A stretch of DNA of 64,000 nucleotides from contig CM119381.1 of NCBI GenBank assembly GCA_051294905.1, positions 8,804,001 through 8,868,000 on the forward strand. The letters are read 5' to 3'. This document shows, piece after piece, positions 50,401 through 63,273 of this stretch. Within the stretch, counting starts at the first letter, position 1. The number at the start of each line of letters is the position of its first letter. The position numbers and the translations under genes were made by a program. The notes under the pieces are model-generated. The model was not told the DNA's origin and ran no database searches. It saw only the letters and a program-made list of their open reading frames with translations. Source of the stretch: Botryllus schlosseri (lineage: Eukaryota).

Positions 50401-53400
50401 CTCCGATCCGGTCCGGCTAAAATTGTAAAATTCCGGCCGGATATCCAATCCGGCTCCGGTCCATGCTCCGCACTAATACATACATGTGATCTGTTTTCTG
50501 CGAGTCAGTTTGAACTAATAGCATTTAGAGCAGGGGCGGGCAACATACGGCGCGCGACGGGATTTTGTCTGGCCCACGGACACTCTCCCGTCCTACATGA
50601 TAATGTGGCCCACGTTTCCAGTGTTATGCTGTCAATAGAAACGATGCTCACCAAATTTGGTTCAATTGCAACCACTGGAAGTGGAGTTATTGCCGTCGAA
50701 AAATTTGGATTATGATTAAAATAGTATTCACGGTGACCGATTCTTTGTTTATTTAATATACTGGTGCTCACCGTAAATACTATTTTATTCAAATCAAAAT
50801 TTTTCGACGGCAATAACTCCGCTTCCACTGGTTGGAATTGAACCAAATTTGGTGAGGACCGTTTCTATAGACAGCCTAACACTTTCATGGGGTGAACAGA
50901 AAATTTTCAAATTTTTTATTATTTATTTATATATAATAAATAGAAACTTTATTCTCCTGTAGCAAAGCGGTTACTGGCTGGAATTGAACCAAATTTTGTG
51001 CGTAGGCTTAAATTAGGTAACCTAACAATTTTATCAAGTAGCCAGTACGATTTGAGAAAAAAAGTCAGTTTTGAAGAGCCCTAATGAGCATTCATGATAA
51101 TATCCTTATATCATGTCCAAAGTCTAATCCGGTTTCGTGAACCGTAGTACCATCCAAATTCAAGGTATATATTCAAATCTGGATTTCCAAGTTCAATGTA
51201 AGTCGATGCTAATGCATATCACCCTGTTAATATATTGCGAAAACATGAATGTACTTAATCCAACTGGAACGTGTTGTCTTTATTATACATATATGATTCG
51301 CCTTCTATTGTAGGATTTGCACGCCTGCAAGTCAATTGGTTCGGCGCTTGCTGTTGAGTCAACTGACTATACCCGGATTTCAAGTGTTCCGAAAAGGAAT
51401 GGCGAAGATTTACCAAAGCATTGTCACAGAGCTGACGGCAATGGTATTGTGATTACACTAATTAGCTTAGTCCTACAGCCTGTATAGGCCAGGTATACGC
51501 AGTTGGTATGACTGAAAATTTCAATATGCGCCATGAATTGCTGTTTAGCAACGCACAGTTTTTGACATTGTGTTTTGGTGGTAAGGAGAGCGCATCTCTT
51601 GTCGCGTTTGAACTACAGGTCGACCGATTATCGACCAGGCCGATATGAGGAGCTTTTCCGATATCGCGACTGATATTTTATATATTAAAAAATTCAAAAA
51701 TATTGGAAATTCAATGCTTCGTGTTCTCAATCTCAAGAAATCGACGACGCAAAAGGCGATACGTGACAAATTTACCCTTGCAGGGCGAGTTTAACTGGGT
51801 GAGCAACTGAGCATGCAGAGAAAATATGATTCCTGCAGTACAATCTACCTCTACAGGCCTGACCTACAATTCTGTATCACGTTTTTCTTTTTGGGTTATC
51901 CCAAATTTCAATGAATGCGCACAATTAAGCAATAATTCTTTTTAATTTCAGTTTTCTTGTTTGTTGTTCAAATTTCTGTTGCATGTACAAGTGCCATCTT
52001 GACTAATACATAATATTTTTGCCGAAATGGTTCCCTGCTCCTTCCATATTAATATCGGCCTATGATATCAGTTATCGGCCTTGTGAGTGTGCCGATAATA
52101 GGTATCGGTCTGCAATAATCTGTCGACCTCTAATTCGAACTGGAGACGTTCCGTACAACCGCAAGAGCGAAGATCTATGTCCCCGTTCCGTGGTATGTGG
52201 CAACAACACCAGCGACGTCTTCAAAGCCGCTGTTGCCTGTTGGAGGTCTTTCTTTTGGCACGCCAACCCCAAGGGCGCCCAGATTAAATCGATGGTTGCA
52301 AACTTTGACCCACAAAAATATAGGCTCCATATTTGAACTTTTAAGGTCATAATTATCATTATTGTTACTACGTCATAATAGAGGGCTCTCGAATGCACGA
52401 CTCGACTCGAAGTTTAGTAGGCCTATAGACTCGGAATCGACTCACAGACGAATTACTCGATTTCTCCCAACCAATCGAAAGTTGACTTCGTTATCTGAGG
52501 TTGAGCTGAAACGGCAACTCTCGTCTAAGATGGATATTGAGACGACATCGCGACCAATTTTCGAAAGTTCCGTGAACCACTTACGGCAGGGGCGGCCATC
52601 CTATAGCCCGCGAGAAGATTTTGAGTGGCCCGCGAGATAATTCTCGAAGTTAGTATTAATATCACATAATAAATTTCTCCGGCACTTTACTTTGAACTTC
52701 CAAGACCAACCAAAATTTGATCAGCCTGATTTCGAAATTTGGGATGTTGATGACTTAAATACCAGTTCCAACGCGTTCGCGCAGCCAGGGGCCAGCAACC
52801 TTTCTCGTAGATCTCCCTATATGACCACAAAGTAGATTTGTCGTTGTAGATTTATTTGACTTGATATTTTTCTTAGCACTTCGCGCGATATTGTCACTCA
52901 ATTTCTTGAATTTAGTACCACTTCCAGAGTGGCCCGCGCTATGGTTCGCAAATCTCATATGGCCCTTTGGCCGAAAAGGTTGGCCGCTCCTGACCTACGG
53001 GTTAAGAACAAGTTGGTTGAACAGTGTGCTATTCGAGTAGTATTGGATTTCGGTATCAACTTTGCTATAAAATCTGTGCAACACCAACAGCGGGGTTTGG
53101 TACAGAATCCACTATATCAATCAGCCAAATAGTATTTTTTTCATCTGTCAAACGAAAAGGAACCTACAATCAAGCACTCCGGCTATGATTCGTCGTCTAA
53201 TTACATCGACTTTATGCAAAGCAGAAGATCGGACAAGTCGAAATCTGTTAGCATGTCAGTATGCACTGTCGATGGTCAACGCTTGTCTTACGGAGATCAA
53301 GGTAAGAAGATTAAGTTTGTAAAGTGACGAAATCGCATGTGCATAAGCCTCGTGTTTACGATACATAGCTACCCTCCATTCCCTTGATTCGTGTGCCGCC

Positions 53401-56400
53401 GTGTTGAACTACTGCATAGCATGTCGCAAAAATGGGATTCAAGCCATGAAATCGCGGATCGGAAAGTCGGCTCTTTTGCGAAATGAGGTAACACAGACAT
53501 ATGTTTAGGCCTGTGTCTGATTAAAAGACCACTTCAAGTCGTTTCGGCACCCTCCTATACGACAATTGTTTGCTTGCCGTGCAATAGGGGAACATTGCGA
53601 CATTTATACGTCAGTCAGTTAACAATGCGAGTTGAGAAATGAGTTGGTCCGTTATGACTTATCTTGTTAATGCTGAACAACCTTCCAGAGCAAGGGGCAA
53701 ATTTATGTACCCAATATATATATATAGCCTATATATATTTATGTATTATCAAAATGAGTTCCAGTTTTAGTATCAGTTCAAGTATTCGGTTGTTAGTTTG
53801 ATAACTCGAATATTTGAAAACAAAATTTCCATGAGAAATATACGTATCGCTGGTGAATGTGAAAAATGTTACAATTGTTGGCCTGTACTACGGGTCAGCC
53901 AGACTCAGCATCATACGGAAAGCCGCGGTTGTGGTTACATTGATAGCATTCTCTTTCGTTCAAGGATGAATTTACATTTGACGAAGACGACAAGGTTTTG
54001 AACCCTTTTACCAAAGCCGGGTCGATCCTGACTTGCGCAACACTTTTGCATAAAGAACTCACGGAGATGCAGGTCGACGAAGTGCACGAAATATATTCGC
54101 AAGCCATCGCAAACGAACCGCTGTGCTGCGATAATCTGAGGTAATACGAGTATATGACCTACTGAAATTTATCTATGGGTTACATAACGTAACGTAACGT
54201 AACCCTACAAGCTGCCCACCACACCAAGGAGATTAAATTCTTCATTCTCCGTATACATGGACATGATCAGAACGCCCCACCCTGGCCTTATAAACGTCTC
54301 TTGAGCTGCATAGGTAGGAAAACTTGGAGGCGCTTAAGCAGATCGCGATTTACGAGTCACGTTCTCCTAACCCATACCTGGTCAAGTCTACTTCAACATT
54401 TATATACTCTAACTTTGCAACAAAACATCTATCATATTATATTCATTTTTCAATGTAATTGCATTCATAACAAAACAAACTATAAAAATTATCAAGGATC
54501 TAAATGACAGAAACTGATTCTATACTCAAAATCTCCTGAATAGTATACGCTGAATTTACTCCAATAGTTGGAGTGGGGCTAGAACTTTATTGCAGGGTCA
54601 GGTAGTTTATTCATTGATGAACAATAATATTTCGATAAAAATTATTACAAAACCTACAACTTATGACACGGAAATGCAGAAGTCACAAAGCACTCCATGA
54701 CGTTGAGTGCATTTTTCGCGAAAAAAAGTGTTCTAGGATCAGAAAGAATTCAGACCAGACATGAAGGTACTCATGCTCCTGGCACCAACCAAAGTAGATG
54801 CGATTCCATTAAATTGAAATTTGTCTAGCTTTATGCACATGAAGGTAAATCAGATTGAAGAATGCATCGGGGAGCAAAATCATTATCTAATTTCAAGTAT
54901 CCTTCGTACGTAACTAATGTTATTTGTATGAATTCAGTAATCGGTATCAACCCAAAGAACTTGGGGCAGTCTTATTTCCGTGTAATATGGATCTCACTGC
55001 ACCAGAAAGCACATTACAATAAAAAAAAAACATACAGTCCGCACAGTAAAGGGGTGGCAAGTGGCTTTTATCACAGCCAACTTGAAATTTCTTTTGTTCA
55101 TTGTCAAATTGGCATGGAAAGGAAGCTTCGTCTTGGTGCATCGTGAGTATTTCCATGACACTTTTTTACCAACACCATTCTGGTTTTAAGCAACGGATAT
55201 CATGACAGGTTCAGGCATAGTTCAGTGTGAAAATTTTCAATTGCTTGTCAGAATCATTTTCATGGCAGTGCATGACAGACAATATGCTATTTTCGATAAT
55301 AATCTTTTATCTCCTGTAGTAGATTCATTAAAACAATCAATATCCTGGTAAAGTATTTAAAGACATGGATCACATTTCAACTGCAGAACTTGTGGTCATC
55401 TGCTGCATCACCTTAGTTACAAATTTAATCTTGGTAGTTTCGTTGTATACAACTTCAATACAATTTTAGCATTGAGCATATGCTGTCGGATAAAGATACC
55501 AACCTAAAGGGTTCGTGTTCAGTTATCAGTGAAGCATGCGGTAGGGAATCGGTTATCCAAAAGGTATCCGGAACATGCTCATTCATGGGGTTTCTTGTAA
55601 ATCGCTTCCACGAGCCCTTTGGGAAAACCGCATGAGTTACAAATACGCTGACCCTGGAAGCGCCAGCCGATTTCATGCAAGCGATGCATCTTTGTACAGT
55701 TCCGCCGGTGTTGATCAAGTCGTCAACGATTATCACATGTTGGTTTTTCGGATTCCCATCCACTATTGTGACCTCACGTTCACTTCCTTTACGTCGTTTT
55801 ATACAGCGGATCACAGGGAAATCCTTGAAATAATAACTGAACCTTTTATAAGCGCCTTCGTCTGGGAATGCTATGGCAATTGGGATATCGTCTTCAAATT
55901 GGTTGATAACTTCAATGAACTTTGGCATCGCCGATGCAAGTTTAGGAACGATATTATCGCTGAAATAGAATCTTTCCTGAAGAGCGTGGATGTCATATGT
56001 CATCAAACGAGCTGGTCCCATAGAAGAGAGTGGTATCGCTGATAGCAACCTTGCCATAGCAACAGCTGTAGCCACTTGACCTTCGGTGTCGACTCTTTCC
56101 ATTGTCCCAGTGTTGTAATAAGGAAGTACAAAAGTCAGTGATTTGATTGAAGATTTAGGTAATGTATATAAAACGGAAATCTGCTCAAATATAATAGCAG
56201 GAGAGTAAAAGCTTCCGACGAAGATCACGTGCTTGTCACTGAAGTCCTCGATGTTTTCGATGAAAATGTTGGGATAGCCATCCTCGAATGCATTCCACTT
56301 TACGGCGTCCATTCTAACATCCACCCTCACCTTGCTATTAGATTGAGAACATCTGGCTGCGATTTCTTTTTCGATCCTCGCGACCAACGTCTTCATATCC

Positions 56401-59400
56401 CGGTGGCAAATGAGGATGGTGTTTTGGCCTGACATAGCGAGCTTCACCCACCAGCTTTTACATTGATACCAGTTTCTGGTTCTGGTTGTGATGTTTACAT
56501 TTCTCTGCTGCTCGGTGTTCCGCTTTAGCTGATAAGTCAGCAAAATCACTCAACCGTGACTGGAAATTTTGCGGTTGAGTAGTTCGAATTTTATTGAGAA
56601 ACTCACTTAGAGTTCGGGTCACTGAGTGGGTTCGGGTTTCGATTCATTATCGAATGTTAACATGGAATGGCAGCGACCGATTTTGCAGCCTCGTTTCGCT
56701 TCGCTGAGGCTGGAGTCAGAATTATTTCGCGGCAGTGACTGGCAATCGAAAAGTTATCTTCCAGAGCCAGGAATTTACGGAATCTGGTCTTGATAACTTC
56801 TGGATTGCCTGAAATCCTACAGTCGCTGCCGCAAAATTATTCTGAACTCAGCCTTAGCGAAGCGGAACGAAGCTGCAAAATCGGTCGTTGCCATTCCATG
56901 TTTACATTCGACATATTCACAATGTAGATTGCAATCGGGTCAAGTTATTATGCCATGAATGCAGAAGAAACAATACAACAGAGAATAAAATGTCGAAATT
57001 TGCCGCGACGATTGCCTAGCTCATTACAAACTGCACAATATTTATTAGTTATCGACTATGAGAATTGCTCCTGTCCTGGCTGGGTGGCTCGGCTCTGAAG
57101 ACTTTGTCATATCGAGCCTAACGTCTACCTTGCATGTCGCATTTCAATGTTACATTTTTGCAATGTTATGTTGATATGTTATGTATACGAATAAAGATGC
57201 TCTCTCTCTCTCTCTCTCTCAATAGTGCATGCGTTGGCGAACACAGTTGTGTCTCATAATACAAAAGTAAAATCTAATTCTTATCATGATATGTGAAAAT
57301 TCACGGTTCTTCGATATTGTAAGGACATATGTCCATTATCCGAGTTAGGGAGCAAGATTTGTATTGAGTGGCGCAGTATCGTAGAATCTTTGGTAGAATC
57401 TTTGGTTAGAATCTTCTCAGCGTATAACTTTTTTGCTTCAATATTGCTGCCAACCTACCAAGCTGGAAAAGTGGTTATGAATATCGTAGGCCCCGTTACC
57501 CCGGCTACAGACAAATCAGTTTATCTTCCTTCCTCCGACCTATACCCCCGTCATTATTTTTATCAGAACTTATGCATCCGTAGTTTTAGCGGTAGCCGGA
57601 TCATTTTACGATGAGTCGAATAAGACGACGGACGTATTGCGAAATTCTGTTTGTATTACGATAGCTGTTACGGCACGCACCGCTAAGATTTTCTCGGGCT
57701 GGAACGAGCCACCCGACCGACAAAAACCGATCGTTCCTGTAGCTCATCAGGAAACAGTGGCGCCGGACCCACACAATGTACCGATATGGGTCCGTCAATT
57801 TGGACTGGACAGCGCCGGGGACCGTCCTGGTCGCGTCAAGCACTAGCATAGATAGCGCCGCTCCGAGCTTCATCGTTTCGTTCACTCCGCCCGTTCCATC
57901 GAAGTCGGTTATATATAGTTATTTGCGCCCTTTCTAGCCCTACATTTCGATTGATGTTGTCGAATCTCAACATAAATATGGAACGATGGAATTTGATTTG
58001 TGTGATCTCTGTACGGACGATTTGTTGGTTTGAGTTTGCTAATACGATCAGTGAGCCCTGTTCAATCAAAGACTAACGTATATCCCACCGTGACCATATA
58101 CTGCCCGAGAGAGAATGTCCGAATAAACGTTCTGCCCAAAACGTTTGTCCCAAATGTATTGTATTCATTTCAGCTACAATCTCAAGAGATTGTACGCCCA
58201 CGAAGAAATATCTCTAGCGTATTTCTTGAGTGCAAGATTGAAACTGCCGAGGATGTGCGTTCCTGGGGATCTATTGGAATTCCATTTTCAATCTTCGTCC
58301 ACGGCCGTTACTTGTGACTCGGCATCTATCGCAGCGGCAACTATTGCAAATGGCGGACAATGTCCTCTGACAGGTGACAAGTCAACAATCGACCAATAGG
58401 CTTACCACGCTATCTTTGCCAAGATAAGTAAGTCAATATGTCTGCAAATATGAATATTGGCTACGTCATAAATGCATCCAAGAAAACGTATTTTCGATAT
58501 GGCATGACTAGAACTGACGAGTTAGCACAATCAATCATACTTGTATTCACAGCCGCACCTCAAACCTAACTAATTGAGGAAAGGGTAAGTGCGAAAGGGC
58601 ACAAAAATTAGTAATTTCGGTAATTTTCTCAAATTTCAAATGGTTTCTTTCGCAATATTACCGCGTCCCTCTTTATGTGGCAAGTGATCGTTTCGATTAT
58701 CTAGTGCAGTTGTTCTCAGACTTAATTAGACACCCCCATTTATGAAAATGAACAATTTCGCGCCCCCTTATCGTGACTACACTAATTATAAATTAGCGCG
58801 AAAAATTCGGTTGACCGCAGCTTCGCGCCTACGTTCAGATGCTTTTACGCCCCTAAGGGGGGGGGGACTGATCTAGTTAATAGTAGTGACTAAGCGACGT
58901 GTTTCATTGTTTGTGGTTACGTCAAATGATTTGTTCATTGCTAAAACTGAAAATAACGATGCTGATACGAAAACAGCGCCTTGTATCCCCCAACAAGTTC
59001 GTTTGACCACCATATAAATTGAGTACCAAACTTTTGGGTATTGCGGGTGACATCCATACGTGCTTCGTTGCTGCGTCGCTCGAGTCCGACAGAATGCCAG
59101 CAGGGCCTAACAGCTCCTTGCCAGCACACATAGTTCGGTGTGTTCATTCCGAAGTGGAAGATTCCTACGAGAGAAGAAGTTCGCTTCATAACATAAACAG
59201 CTATTGAAAATGAGTCGTGGGGTGAAACTTAATACAAAAAGTCGATATTGAATCACTTCCCCGTAACAAAAACATCTCCTTTCCAGATGAAACAGTTTTC
59301 AAGGAAGAAATTATTCAGCACACTCTGAAGCGTATGCGATGTAGCTTGTCGAAATATACCGACTGTAAGGAGGTATAGTTACTAGTTAAATAGGCCTACC

Positions 59401-60075
59401 TATTGTTTTATTTATGATTCATCGCATATTTCTGTTGACTGTTGATTTTCAATAGATGGAAGATATCTGTTGTACAACGAGTGAAAGCGGCACTGTATTT
59501 CTTGTCATACCCGGCGTTCTGGGACTCGTCTTTTTCCTGCATTCATATCCGAGACCAACAGTTTCGAAAGTGGTGGACTCTTTGATTCATGTGAGTGAAT
59601 TGATTGGGACTTTGAGAGCATAGATAGTCGTTACCGAAGTACTTCTCAAGTACGCTTACTCGAGTAGGTTAACCAACTTGCTGTACTCAAGTTCCATCCT
59701 TTAGGATATTTCCACTTCTGTTTGAACAGGTCCTACATCCACAGCACTCCAATTTGGACTTTGAGAATGTTGTAAAGTAGAAAGTAGTTTATGATAGGCT
59801 CGCATGGATTTCTGAGAACTACAACTACTTTTGTTCACGGAGCATGCCGCATCTGATGTTTGAAGTTCGTCGCGGCTCTTCGAAAATATAGTGATTACGG
59901 GACGACAAATTCCACACTATTACCACACAGCGCATAGACTCGAAATCAGATTGGCAGTGCCTGTGCCTGAATGCAGAAACATGTTGAATTTTTATCACAG
60001 AATTTAGGAGCTGAGTTCAATTTCTCGCTGTACCGAAATTTGAAGAGCCGAGAAGACAGATGCTGCAAACGATGA
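44450..60075 (+). CDS. Divergent glutaminase-like protein (GLS fold, degenerate active site, long N-terminal extension, no ankyrin tail), about 760 aa
   Basis: Exons: 44450-44986, 47051-47156, 49153-49744, 51314-51443, 53175 (or 53160)-53301, 53369-53487, 53965-54140, 58174-58373, 59287-59372, 59456-59590, 60001-60075. All are GT-AG and phase-consistent. GLS-like segments: KGIWLSDPRLKE, LTIPGF, SVCTVDGQR, DEDDKVLNPFTKAG, VTCDSASIAAATIANGGQCPLT, VFLVIPGVLG, FNFSLYRNL. The first two exons and the start codon are less certain than the GLS-homologous exons. Confidence 0.8.
44911..45074 (+). repeat. 82-bp tandem duplication spanning an exon end and splice donor
   Basis: 44911-44992 and 44993-45074 differ by one base. 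Each contains ATGCAG|GTGCGT. Confidence 0.95.
45292..45683. mobile_element. hAT-like MITE (TCGAGTACTCGA family)
   Basis: TIR TAGGGCTGGGCA...TGCCCAGCCCTA with a perfect TSD cttgtagg. Confidence 0.9.
45715..46789. mobile_element. Longer non-autonomous hAT-like element (TAGGGTTGCCAT, GTCCGGAA repeats)
   Basis: TIR TAGGGTTGCCAT...ATGGTAACCCTA with gttgtat duplicated on the flanks. Collinear with 63372-64000. Confidence 0.85.
50136..50475. mobile_element. hAT-like MITE (CCGGCTCCGG family)
   Basis: TIR TAGTGCGGAGC...GCTCCGCACTA; TSD acacatac/atacatac. Confidence 0.85.
50635..50868. repeat. Inverted repeat with arms of about 77 bp
   Basis: 50635-50711 pairs with 50792-50868 (accaaatttggttcaatt...ggagttattgccgtcgaaaaa). 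Confidence 0.85.
51614..52132. mobile_element. hAT-like MITE (CCGATA/ATCGG family)
   Basis: Ends TACAGGTCGAC...GTCGACCTCTA; flanks gtttgaac/attcgaac (6/8). Confidence 0.65.
52587..52992. mobile_element. hAT-Charlie-like MITE (GGCCCGCG family)
   Basis: TIR CAGGGGCGGCCA...TGGCCGCTCCTG; TSD acttacgg/acctacgg. Confidence 0.85.
55455..56435 (-). CDS. Class II (plant PRS3/PRS4-type) ribose-phosphate pyrophosphokinase, intronless, 326 aa
   Basis: First ATG at 56435 (the ORF track starts at an upstream GTG). PRTase PRPP-binding motif VIIVDDLINTGGT. Class II signatures: FEDGYPNIFI, SPAIIFEQISV, TGTMERVDTEGQVATA, YDIHALQERFYF, AFPDEGAYKRF, VTHAVFPKGSW, FWITDS. These closely match Arabidopsis PRS4 as recalled. 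Confidence 0.92.
   Translation of the reverse strand: MSGQNTILICHRDMKTLVARIEKEIAARCSQSNSKVRVDVRMDAVKWNAFEDGYPNIFIENIEDFSDKHVIFVGSFYSPAIIFEQISVLYTLPKSSIKSLTFVLPYYNTGTMERVDTEGQVATAVAMARLLSAIPLSSMGPARLMTYDIHALQERFYFSDNIVPKLASAMPKFIEVINQFEDDIPIAIAFPDEGAYKRFSYYFKDFPVIRCIKRRKGSEREVTIVDGNPKNQHVIIVDDLINTGGTVQRCIACMKSAGASRVSVFVTHAVFPKGSWKRFTRNPMNEHVPDTFWITDSLPHASLITEHEPFRLVSLSDSICSMLKLY
56650..56911. repeat. 262-bp fold-back palindrome immediately upstream of the PRPS gene
   Basis: The left arm tcgaatgttaacatggaatggcagcgaccgattttgcagc... pairs with the right arm ...gctgcaaaatcggtcgttgccattccatgtttacattcga over more than 100 bp. Confidence 0.9.
57070..57220 (+). mobile_element. Retroelement 3' tail with AATAAA and (TC)n
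   Basis: ...atacgaataaagatgc(tc)n has the same tail architecture as 28023-28050 on the minus strand. The 5' boundary is approximate. Confidence 0.45.
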
Positions 60076-62724: not shown

Positions 62725-63273
62725 TCATGCTGGCATTTGAGTAACACCAATATTATCTCTCAAGTAACAGAAAGGTTGTCGACGTAAAGGCTTTGTCAAG
62801 ATATCGGCCAATTGATCATCACTTGGTACATACCGAATTTCAATTCTATCACCATCAAGTTCATGTTTGATATAACCAAATTTTATTGCAATGTGCTTGT
62901 TTGCTTGGTGATTCACAGGATTCTTGCACATAGCAATAGCACTTTGATTATCTTCATATATTGTGATTGGTCCATCAATTTTTCTCCCCATTTCGTCATG
63001 CAACTGACGAAACCATGCAGTTTCTCGAGCGACAAGATTCAACGCAGTGAATTCGGCTTCAGCAGTAGACTGTGCCGTTACAGTTTGTTTTTTCGATCTC
63101 CATGCAATAGGACCATTGTTTTTCATTATTACATATCCAGACGTTGACTTTCTGTCATCTCGATCTCCACCAAAATCAGCATATGCGTAGGCCATAATTG
63201 TATGCGGCTCACGCCTGTAAAGTATCCCATAATCAACAGTTCCACGAATGTAACGTAACAAGTGCCTTGTCAT
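62725..63273 (-). pseudogene. Ty1/copia pol 3' fragment (RT C-terminus plus RNase H)
   Basis: Motifs LLRYIRGT, ADFGGDRDDRKSTSGY, WRSKKQ..TAQSTAEAEF, IYEDNQSAI, KHIAIK, QLADILTKPL. The first RNase H Asp appears replaced (YAYAD). The frame is closed by a stop just upstream of 63281. Confidence 0.92.

Follow-up and report, generated by a model that had tools for sequence, protein, structure and literature searches.

An intronless, transcribed class II phosphoribosyl pyrophosphate synthetase gene nested within a glutaminase-like gene of the sea squirt Botryllus schlosseri

We analyzed a 64-kb stretch of the Botryllus schlosseri genome (GenBank assembly GCA_051294905.1, contig CM119381.1, positions 8,804,001 to 8,868,000 of the forward strand), referred to here as the window and numbered from its first nucleotide. 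The window contains no stretches of N, and its only open reading frame (ORF) of more than 200 amino acids (aa) encodes a phosphoribosyl pyrophosphate (PRPP) synthetase (PRPS or PRS), which is the subject of this report. The coding sequence occupies 55455..56435 on the minus strand as a single exon of 326 codons plus stop (981 nt), running from an ATG at 56435 to a stop codon at 55457-55455 with no internal stops. The frame stays open upstream of the ATG as far as a GTG at 56549, and the N termini of orthologs line up with the ATG at 56435. The product has the architecture of the PRPP synthetase superfamily, an N-terminal PRPP synthetase domain followed by a type I phosphoribosyltransferase domain, and its matches to Pfam PF13793 (Pribosyltran_N, 32.8 bits) and PF00156 (Pribosyltran, 36.6 bits) both exceed the cutoffs. 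It scored 114.5 bits against TIGR01251 (cutoff, 113), and PRPP synthetases with solved structures in the PDB matched residues 47 to 324 with E values down to 2e-19.

The protein contains the motifs NTGTMER (residues 108-114), DIHALQERFYF (residues 148-158), FPDEGAYKRF (residues 190-199), KRR of the catalytic flexible loop (residues 213-215), and IIVDDLINTGGT of the ribose-5-phosphate loop (residues 235-246). In the alignment, the catalytic residues are retained, namely, H150 (in DIHALQ), D192 (in FPDEG), K213-R214-R215, and D238-D239..T243-G-G-T246. MAFFT placed the K-x-R motif one residue off the KER of class I enzymes, and the K-x-R assignment is our own reading. The catalytic flexible loop reads K-R-R-K-G in this protein and its close ascidian kin, whereas other animals and plants have K-[VI]-R-[ED]-G.

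The marks that separate the two classes of PRPP synthetases were read from an alignment with the class I PRPS of the same genome (318 aa; L002:1297-2253; collinear with human PRPS1) and 12 class II sequences. According to a 2026 preprint (PMC13252144), class II enzymes have a TMER-type regulatory loop, have lost the Glu of the FLAG region, and have a divergent C terminus without the filament interface. The equivalent of human PRPS1 E39, the FLAG-region Glu, is N in the window protein and in 12/12 aligned class II sequences. The equivalent of human R96 is T, inside the NTGTMER motif of the regulatory flexible loop, where class I enzymes have R-Q-D-K/R. The protein terminates in SMLKLY, about 15 residues short of the class I end, and the equivalents of S308, S310, and F313 are gaps; the class I C-terminal segment, which carries the allosteric site and the filament interface, has no counterpart. 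Identity to class II proteins was 45 to 77%, compared with 25% to the class I PRPS of the same genome. By these sequence marks, the ORF encodes a class II (PRS3/PRS4-type) PRPP synthetase. The original prediction, which had been made from the window sequence, described a single 981-nt PRPP synthetase ORF at this position, quoted the motifs DIHALQERFYF and FPDEGAYKRF, and assigned the product to the PRS3/PRS4 type. The start and stop codons, domains, and PDB matches bear out the ORF, both motifs are where the residue numbers above put them, and the class assignment agrees with the TMER loop, the E39-to-N replacement, the missing C-terminal segment, and the low class I identity.

The enzyme should form PRPP from ribose 5-phosphate and a nucleoside triphosphate. 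The alignment shows no N-terminal extension or transit peptide, and given this, the cytosol would be its natural location. The diagnostic residues suggest an enzyme without phosphate activation and without the ADP/GDP allosteric inhibition of class I. Judging from these residues and from plant enzymology together, the protein may combine phosphate independence and lack of ADP/GDP inhibition with a broad range of diphosphoryl donors. It counts against the functional side of our interpretation that the class II kinetic behavior expected of tunicate proteins comes from residues and plant enzymes.

Next, we considered the transcript. Four public sequencing runs were aligned to positions 53900-58400 of the window (4,501 nt), three of which had been taken as RNA by guess. 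These three runs behave as RNA: they cover the PRS unit without a break and also cover the two flanking exons of the surrounding gene described below, and the rest of the intron between those exons is mostly bare. Outside the PRS unit, the intron has mostly zero RNA coverage except for segments of dispersed repeats and a few stray reads. The RNA contigs are continuous from 54484 to about 56478 with no joint inside (starts at 54484 in run X20 and 54500 in run X15; pieces up to 56403). The PRS gene is thus read from the minus strand into a single unspliced mRNA of about 2 kb, as judged from contigs, which can miss rare isoforms. The unbroken contigs give a 3' untranslated region (UTR) of about 970 nt (54484..55454, minus strand) whose end is approximate. 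The 3'-biased single-cell RNA reads of run X23 stack at 54504-54956 and are almost all of the "first_mate_on+" kind, fitting an RNA from the minus strand, and candidate AATAAA signals (TTTATT on the plus strand) lie near 54586 and 54606. The 5' UTR is short (56436..56478, minus strand); its end is approximate, being estimated from bin depth, with the bin starting at 56467 showing an RNA depth of about 2.6 compared with about 34 before it.

The whole PRS transcription unit sits antisense within one intron of a glutaminase-like gene on the plus strand (53175-59590). Four or more short, conserved exon blocks were recognized in this host gene, one of its introns is verified by RNA, and its glutaminase homology is confirmed for two exons and one splice joint. 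The intron in question spans 54141..58173 (4,033 nt; GT..AG, with the gt at 54141-54142), and the splice joint 54140/58174 was seen as an RNA-contig joint in two runs (X15 and X20). The exon before it (53962..54140) matches positions 84-132 of the Pfam Glutaminase profile with an E value of 0.0015, which is under the Pfam cutoff on its own. The exon after it (58174..58376) matches positions 139-200 of the profile with 27.3 bits and human kidney-type GLS chains with an E value of 1.4e-10. Both exons have counterparts in Logan contig L004 from a related species (L004:4836-5021 for the exon before the intron and L004:1146-1371 for the exon after it). Between these counterparts and on the opposite strand, L004 carries a contiguous PRS ORF that is 77% identical to the window ORF. 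Purine synthesis opens with a reaction between glutamine and PRPP, which makes it a curious coincidence that a PRPP synthetase gene lies, in both species, inside a glutaminase-like gene.

Comparison of the window and L004 copies gave a proportion of nonsynonymous differences (pN) of 0.14 and a proportion of synonymous differences (pS) of 0.90. Because pS is saturated, we report only that pN is far smaller than pS in place of a ratio of the two rates (dN/dS). The PRS protein is under strong purifying selection. The nested arrangement must also be old, since it is common to species whose synonymous divergence is saturated. Within the species, the RNA contigs contain seven coding variants, five of them synonymous and the other two being R37K and R261K (assigned by hand). 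Two runs of separate studies yielded RNA contigs that show two haplotypes over part of the N-terminal coding region (56286-56403), with five differences, four synonymous plus R37K. This pattern indicates a common allelic polymorphism in the species.

To place the gene among its relatives, we compared it with database proteins and built a careful maximum-likelihood tree of 56 sequences under the LG+C20+F+G4 model. The best database matches were three proteins at 77 to 75% identity, followed by the tunicates Styela clava (62%), Clavelina lepadiformis (57%), Phallusia (55%), and Ciona savignyi (53%). The next matches, all at 45 to 54%, came from sponges, cnidarians, molluscs, annelids, echinoderms, hemichordates, amphioxus, Capsaspora, and plants. 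In the tree, the tunicates and the window sequence form one clade (support, 100/100), which splits into a side with Styela and the window sequence (99/89) and a side with Clavelina, Phallusia, and Ciona (99/95); Styela is sister to the group of the window sequence (100/96). Within the tunicates, the best matches and the tree both assign this genome to the Styela side. The tree order inside the tunicates fits accepted tunicate systematics, and for this reason we consider the gene to have been present already in the ascidian ancestor. The plant and algal sequences fall in a clade of their own (100/100), and the best tree sets the tunicates among the eumetazoans. The deep backbone of the tree is weak, and the class I outgroup is joined by a branch of about 10 changes per column.

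Class II genes of other animals are spliced. We rebuilt exon structures from annotated proteins and their loci in Actinia (a cnidarian), Lingula (a brachiopod), Ptychodera (a hemichordate), Branchiostoma (a cephalochordate), and Clavelina; Styela and Ciona were left out. Six introns lie at the same alignment column and in the same phase in Actinia, Lingula, Ptychodera, and Branchiostoma, corresponding to residues 70, 94, 126, 165, 227, and 253 of the window protein. A seventh intron, of phase 0, lies in the variable N terminus of Actinia, Ptychodera, and Branchiostoma (the first exon of Lingula was not recovered). Conservation of class II splice junctions among holozoans has been reported (PMC12238573). 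Because Actinia, Ptychodera, and Branchiostoma have this intron set in common, with six of the introns in Lingula as well, the chordate ancestor had a class II gene with eight exons, and the animal precursor of the window gene was built in this way too. The window gene and the L004 copy have no introns, compared with seven ancestral ones and six in Clavelina, and the UTRs of the window gene are likewise intron free. The class II PRPS gene of Clavelina (L003:4001-6785) has six GT-AG introns, at positions equivalent to window residues 30, 61, 98, 154, 220, and 281, and none is at an ancestral position; the nearest Clavelina and ancestral introns are 4 codons apart and in the same phase. As read from these gene structures, the ancestral eight-exon organization is wholly lost in the tunicates examined (Clavelina, the window species, and the species of L004), and in Clavelina the gene, which encodes a highly conserved enzyme, has undergone a full turnover of its introns.

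The intronless state is not peculiar to the class II gene. The class I PRPS of this genome, which is very close to human PRPS1 (318 aa; G000:C14:5856147-5857100, the same locus as L002:1297-2253), is a single uninterrupted ORF. The same is true of a PRPSAP-like gene (399 aa, with an inserted nonhomologous region; G000:C1:13515866-13517023, the same locus as L010:913-2112, minus strand). All three PRPS-family genes are thus intron free in their coding regions, in a genome that is rich in introns elsewhere. The original prediction had set the single-exon gene against intron-rich neighbors and had proposed a comparison of intron positions with invertebrate orthologs. That comparison came out as outlined above, with nontunicate orthologs spliced at common sites and the window gene bare. 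The contrast with the neighbors stands for the host gene, with its exon blocks and RNA-verified intron, but loses some of its force given the two other intronless PRPS-family genes.

The position of the gene has probably changed as well. In Clavelina, class II PRPS lies between an adhesion G protein-coupled receptor gene and a convergent downstream gene, which has an intron and whose last exon encodes a PP1c_bdg domain (E = 4e-7; L003:8229-8453, minus strand). Contig L005 carries a 61%-identical PRS, which is basal in the Styela-side clade, together with a convergent downstream PP1c_bdg gene (L005:2036-3526, minus strand). The PP1c_bdg regions of Clavelina and L005 are 52% identical over 65 aa (E = 8e-25), and both of these PPP1R15/GADD34-like proteins also carry short repeats of the KNPxIxxILG type. 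The tail-to-tail pairing of PRS with a PPP1R15-like gene, common to the two main ascidian branches, is probably ancestral. No PP1c_bdg gene is present in the 64-kb window or on L004. In the genome assembly, a search with the full PPP1R15-like protein gave no matches, and a search with Pfam PF10488 gave none either, although its controls were silent too; the C-terminal 97 aa gave one match (E = 0.57) that was not PP1c_bdg-like. The locus has probably shifted, from beside a PPP1R15-like gene in Clavelina and L005 to inside a glutaminase-like intron in the window and L004, in a group with poorly conserved synteny. We had considered L005 as a third intronless genomic copy and dropped it: both of its genes are contiguous even though the PP1c_bdg gene of Clavelina is spliced, and the contig ends about 120 to 215 nt past each start codon. 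It is probably a merged transcript contig, informative for gene adjacency only and not for introns.

The most likely history, which we favor on balance, is that of an old retrogene that replaced its parent. A spliced class II mRNA would have been reverse transcribed, and the cDNA copy would have inserted into the intron of the glutaminase-like gene; the inserted copy would have stayed functional, and the parent gene would have been lost later. Retroposition with loss of the parent is suggested because all introns are gone at once, the gene seems to have left the ancestral neighborhood, the insertion is antisense in the intron of another gene, and no parent copy is found. A six-frame search of the whole 495-Mb assembly revealed no second class II locus, so the gene, if a retrogene, would be an orphan without a spliced parent. 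The original prediction had named retroposition of an ancient gene as one origin and had suggested looking for an intron-containing parent elsewhere in the genome. Retroposition remains a reasonable and favored proposal; a recent retrocopy beside a surviving parent does not, given the single locus and the nesting held in common with the species of L004, and the 495-Mb assembly contains no such parent.

Several observations weigh against this history. The flanking sequence contains no encoded poly(A) run past the 3' end, and no flanking direct repeats or target-site duplications were found around the unit, the 14- to 16-nt pairs being internal or at chance level; both kinds of trace are expected to have decayed in an old insertion. 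Tunicate genomes are heavily rearranged, so that a changed neighborhood alone is no proof of retroposition. A decayed parent could not be sought beside the PPP1R15-like gene because that gene was not found in this genome. If L005 is genomic after all, intron loss preceded relocation, as its contiguous PRS ORF lies at the ancestral PPP1R15-like locus. Clavelina lacks the ancestral introns too; their loss may therefore go back to the ascidian stem and have nothing to do with the relocation.

The same observations on L005, on Clavelina, and on the missing poly(A) and target-site traces favor an alternative in which the introns were lost at the original locus, stepwise or by one cDNA recombination, possibly by the time of the ascidian stem, with a DNA-level move into the glutaminase-like intron later. 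With every ancestral intron lost in Clavelina, the introns may have disappeared wholesale before the two ascidian branches diverged, and the single ORFs of the class I PRPS and PRPSAP-like genes hint at a general tendency toward intron loss. However, L005 is probably transcript derived, a complete transcription unit lying antisense in the intron of another gene is the typical landing pattern of a retrogene, and clean DNA-level transfer of one small gene is less parsimonious. We regard intron loss in place as possible but rather doubtful.

Horizontal gene transfer (HGT) into the tunicate ancestor from an alga, a plant relative, or another protist is very improbable. Such an origin would suit the lack of introns in the window gene and the identity of about 48% to plant class II proteins, which is similar to that with other animals (45 to 54%). 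It is also helped by the approximately unbiased (AU) test, whose outcome on this point counts against vertical descent: a grouping of tunicates with plants and algae costs 17.1 log-likelihood units (lnL), yet the test does not reject it (p-AU = 0.199), with both groups on long branches. By comparison, forcing all animals to be monophyletic costs 0.97 lnL (p-AU = 0.445). In 19 alignment columns, animals differ from plants and algae in the conserved residue; among the tunicate residues in these columns, 112 are in the animal state and 30 in the plant state. The GC content of the ORF (0.437, and 0.469 at third codon positions) is close to that of the host exons. Orthologs occur in all sister deuterostome phyla and in most other animal phyla (our matches; PMC12238573). 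Class II PRPS is thus neither nested in a donor clade in the best tree nor absent from the sister lineages of the recipient, the two features that define a horizontally acquired gene. HGT is made very unlikely by the signature columns, the native composition, the embedding in a native spliced gene, and the spliceosomal introns of the Clavelina copy. The case against it does not depend on the tree alone but combines distribution and signature columns with likelihood differences and genomic embedding. An origin by HGT, one option of the original prediction, is left without positive support, as the tunicates form one clade and the sister phyla all have the gene; the preference stated there for an ancient, patchily retained gene agrees with both phylogeny and distribution.

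A recent processed copy or pseudogene of a surviving intron-containing class II gene, or a noncatalytic relic, would fit the single exon and the intron-free UTRs but is scarcely credible given the one class II locus in the six-frame search, the intact and transcribed ORF with all catalytic motifs kept under strong purifying selection, and the same nested copy in a species at saturated synonymous divergence.

We therefore hold with high confidence to an explanation that has at its core a single, functional, vertically inherited ascidian class II PRPS gene, and this confidence applies to the best explanation as a whole, its history included. A broader scenario is offered tentatively. Ascidian class II PRPS may go back to a processed copy, free of introns, that took the place of the chordate gene with its eight exons; the Clavelina introns would then be de novo gains, and the styelid-side copy would have been retroposed again or have stayed bare before its capture in the glutaminase-like gene. 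As the class I and PRPSAP-like genes of this genome have single exons too, processed copies may even have replaced the entire PRPS family in this lineage. If this were true, the genes would form a clean natural series for the wiping out of introns followed by their recolonization.

Two other elements of the window deserve mention. About 170 bp upstream of the PRS transcript, at 56650-56911, lies an element resembling a miniature inverted-repeat transposable element, with two 92-nt arms that are 88% complementary and 78 nt apart. It belongs to a dispersed family for which a first look at the genome gave at least 1,247 candidates (40 of them were scored and gave 123 matches), and RNA contigs cover it very deeply, reaching a depth of about 1,900 (X15). 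At 62725-63273 on the minus strand, there is a 182-aa ORF with YADADFGGDRDDRKSTSGYV, a candidate that we take to resemble the C-terminal reverse transcriptase/RNase H part of a Ty1/copia-type retrotransposon.

The occurrence of class II PRPS in a sea squirt is not itself new. A 2025 study in Nature Communications (PMC12238573) reported the enzyme from most metazoans except Craniata and from most urochordates except Oikopleura, and its supplement names the class II PRPS of Styela clava (XP_039257336.1) and Ciona intestinalis (XP_002127878.1). The class II PRPS of amphioxus (Branchiostoma lanceolatum) is active and forms dimers to hexamers and not the filaments of class I (PMC13252144). A plant-type enzyme in an animal, which the original prediction had presented as a surprise, was thus already in the literature. 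What is new, and of modest interest, are the details of gene structure: the unspliced antisense transcript, the conserved nesting, the total loss of the eight-exon structure, the novel introns of Clavelina, and the PPP1R15-like neighborhood. A plant-like metabolic gene without introns suggests horizontal transfer at first sight, but the gene studied here is an ancient animal one that was lost from vertebrates and retained in tunicates. The locus offers a compact case for the study of reverse transcriptase-mediated intron loss, orphan retrogenes, and intron gain in tunicates. In addition, PRPS biochemistry gains a second class II enzyme of chordate origin, whose catalytic loop is altered to K-R-R-K-G, for comparison with the amphioxus protein.

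Among known systems, PRPS1L1, a eutherian class I gene, is likewise an intronless processed copy of the PRPS family kept under selection (PMC12238573). PRPS1L1 is testis restricted and coexists with its spliced parent PRPS1 (PMC12238573), whereas the window gene is the sole class II copy, with no parent. Class I enzymes, represented by human PRPS1/2 and by the gene of this genome, have the same two-domain fold, catalytic residues, and reaction as the window protein. They differ from it in sequence (25% identity), and the window protein does not have the E39 and R96 adenine contacts or the C-terminal allosteric and filament segment.

The plant class II enzymes (Jatropha, Dioscorea, and the charophyte Closterium) are identical to the window protein, letter for letter, in DIHALQERFYF and nearly so in FPD[DE]GA[WY]KRF. 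They are set apart by T[ST]ER or SFER in place of the animal TMER and by SGGT in place of the animal TGGT, with overall identity at the level given above (~48%). Like plant PRS4, which is cytosolic, the window protein has no transit peptide. Phosphate independence and broad donor use, the properties associated with the PRS3/PRS4-type enzymes of spinach and Arabidopsis, have been measured in plant enzymes only. The closest comparison is with the class II PRPS of other metazoans, which belongs to the same orthologous family (identity of the window protein, 62% to Styela and about 46% to amphioxus) and has the same TMER loop, the same N in place of the FLAG-region Glu, and the same short C terminus. 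The difference lies in gene structure: amphioxus and other nontunicate animals have eight exons with conserved junctions, whereas the window gene has one.

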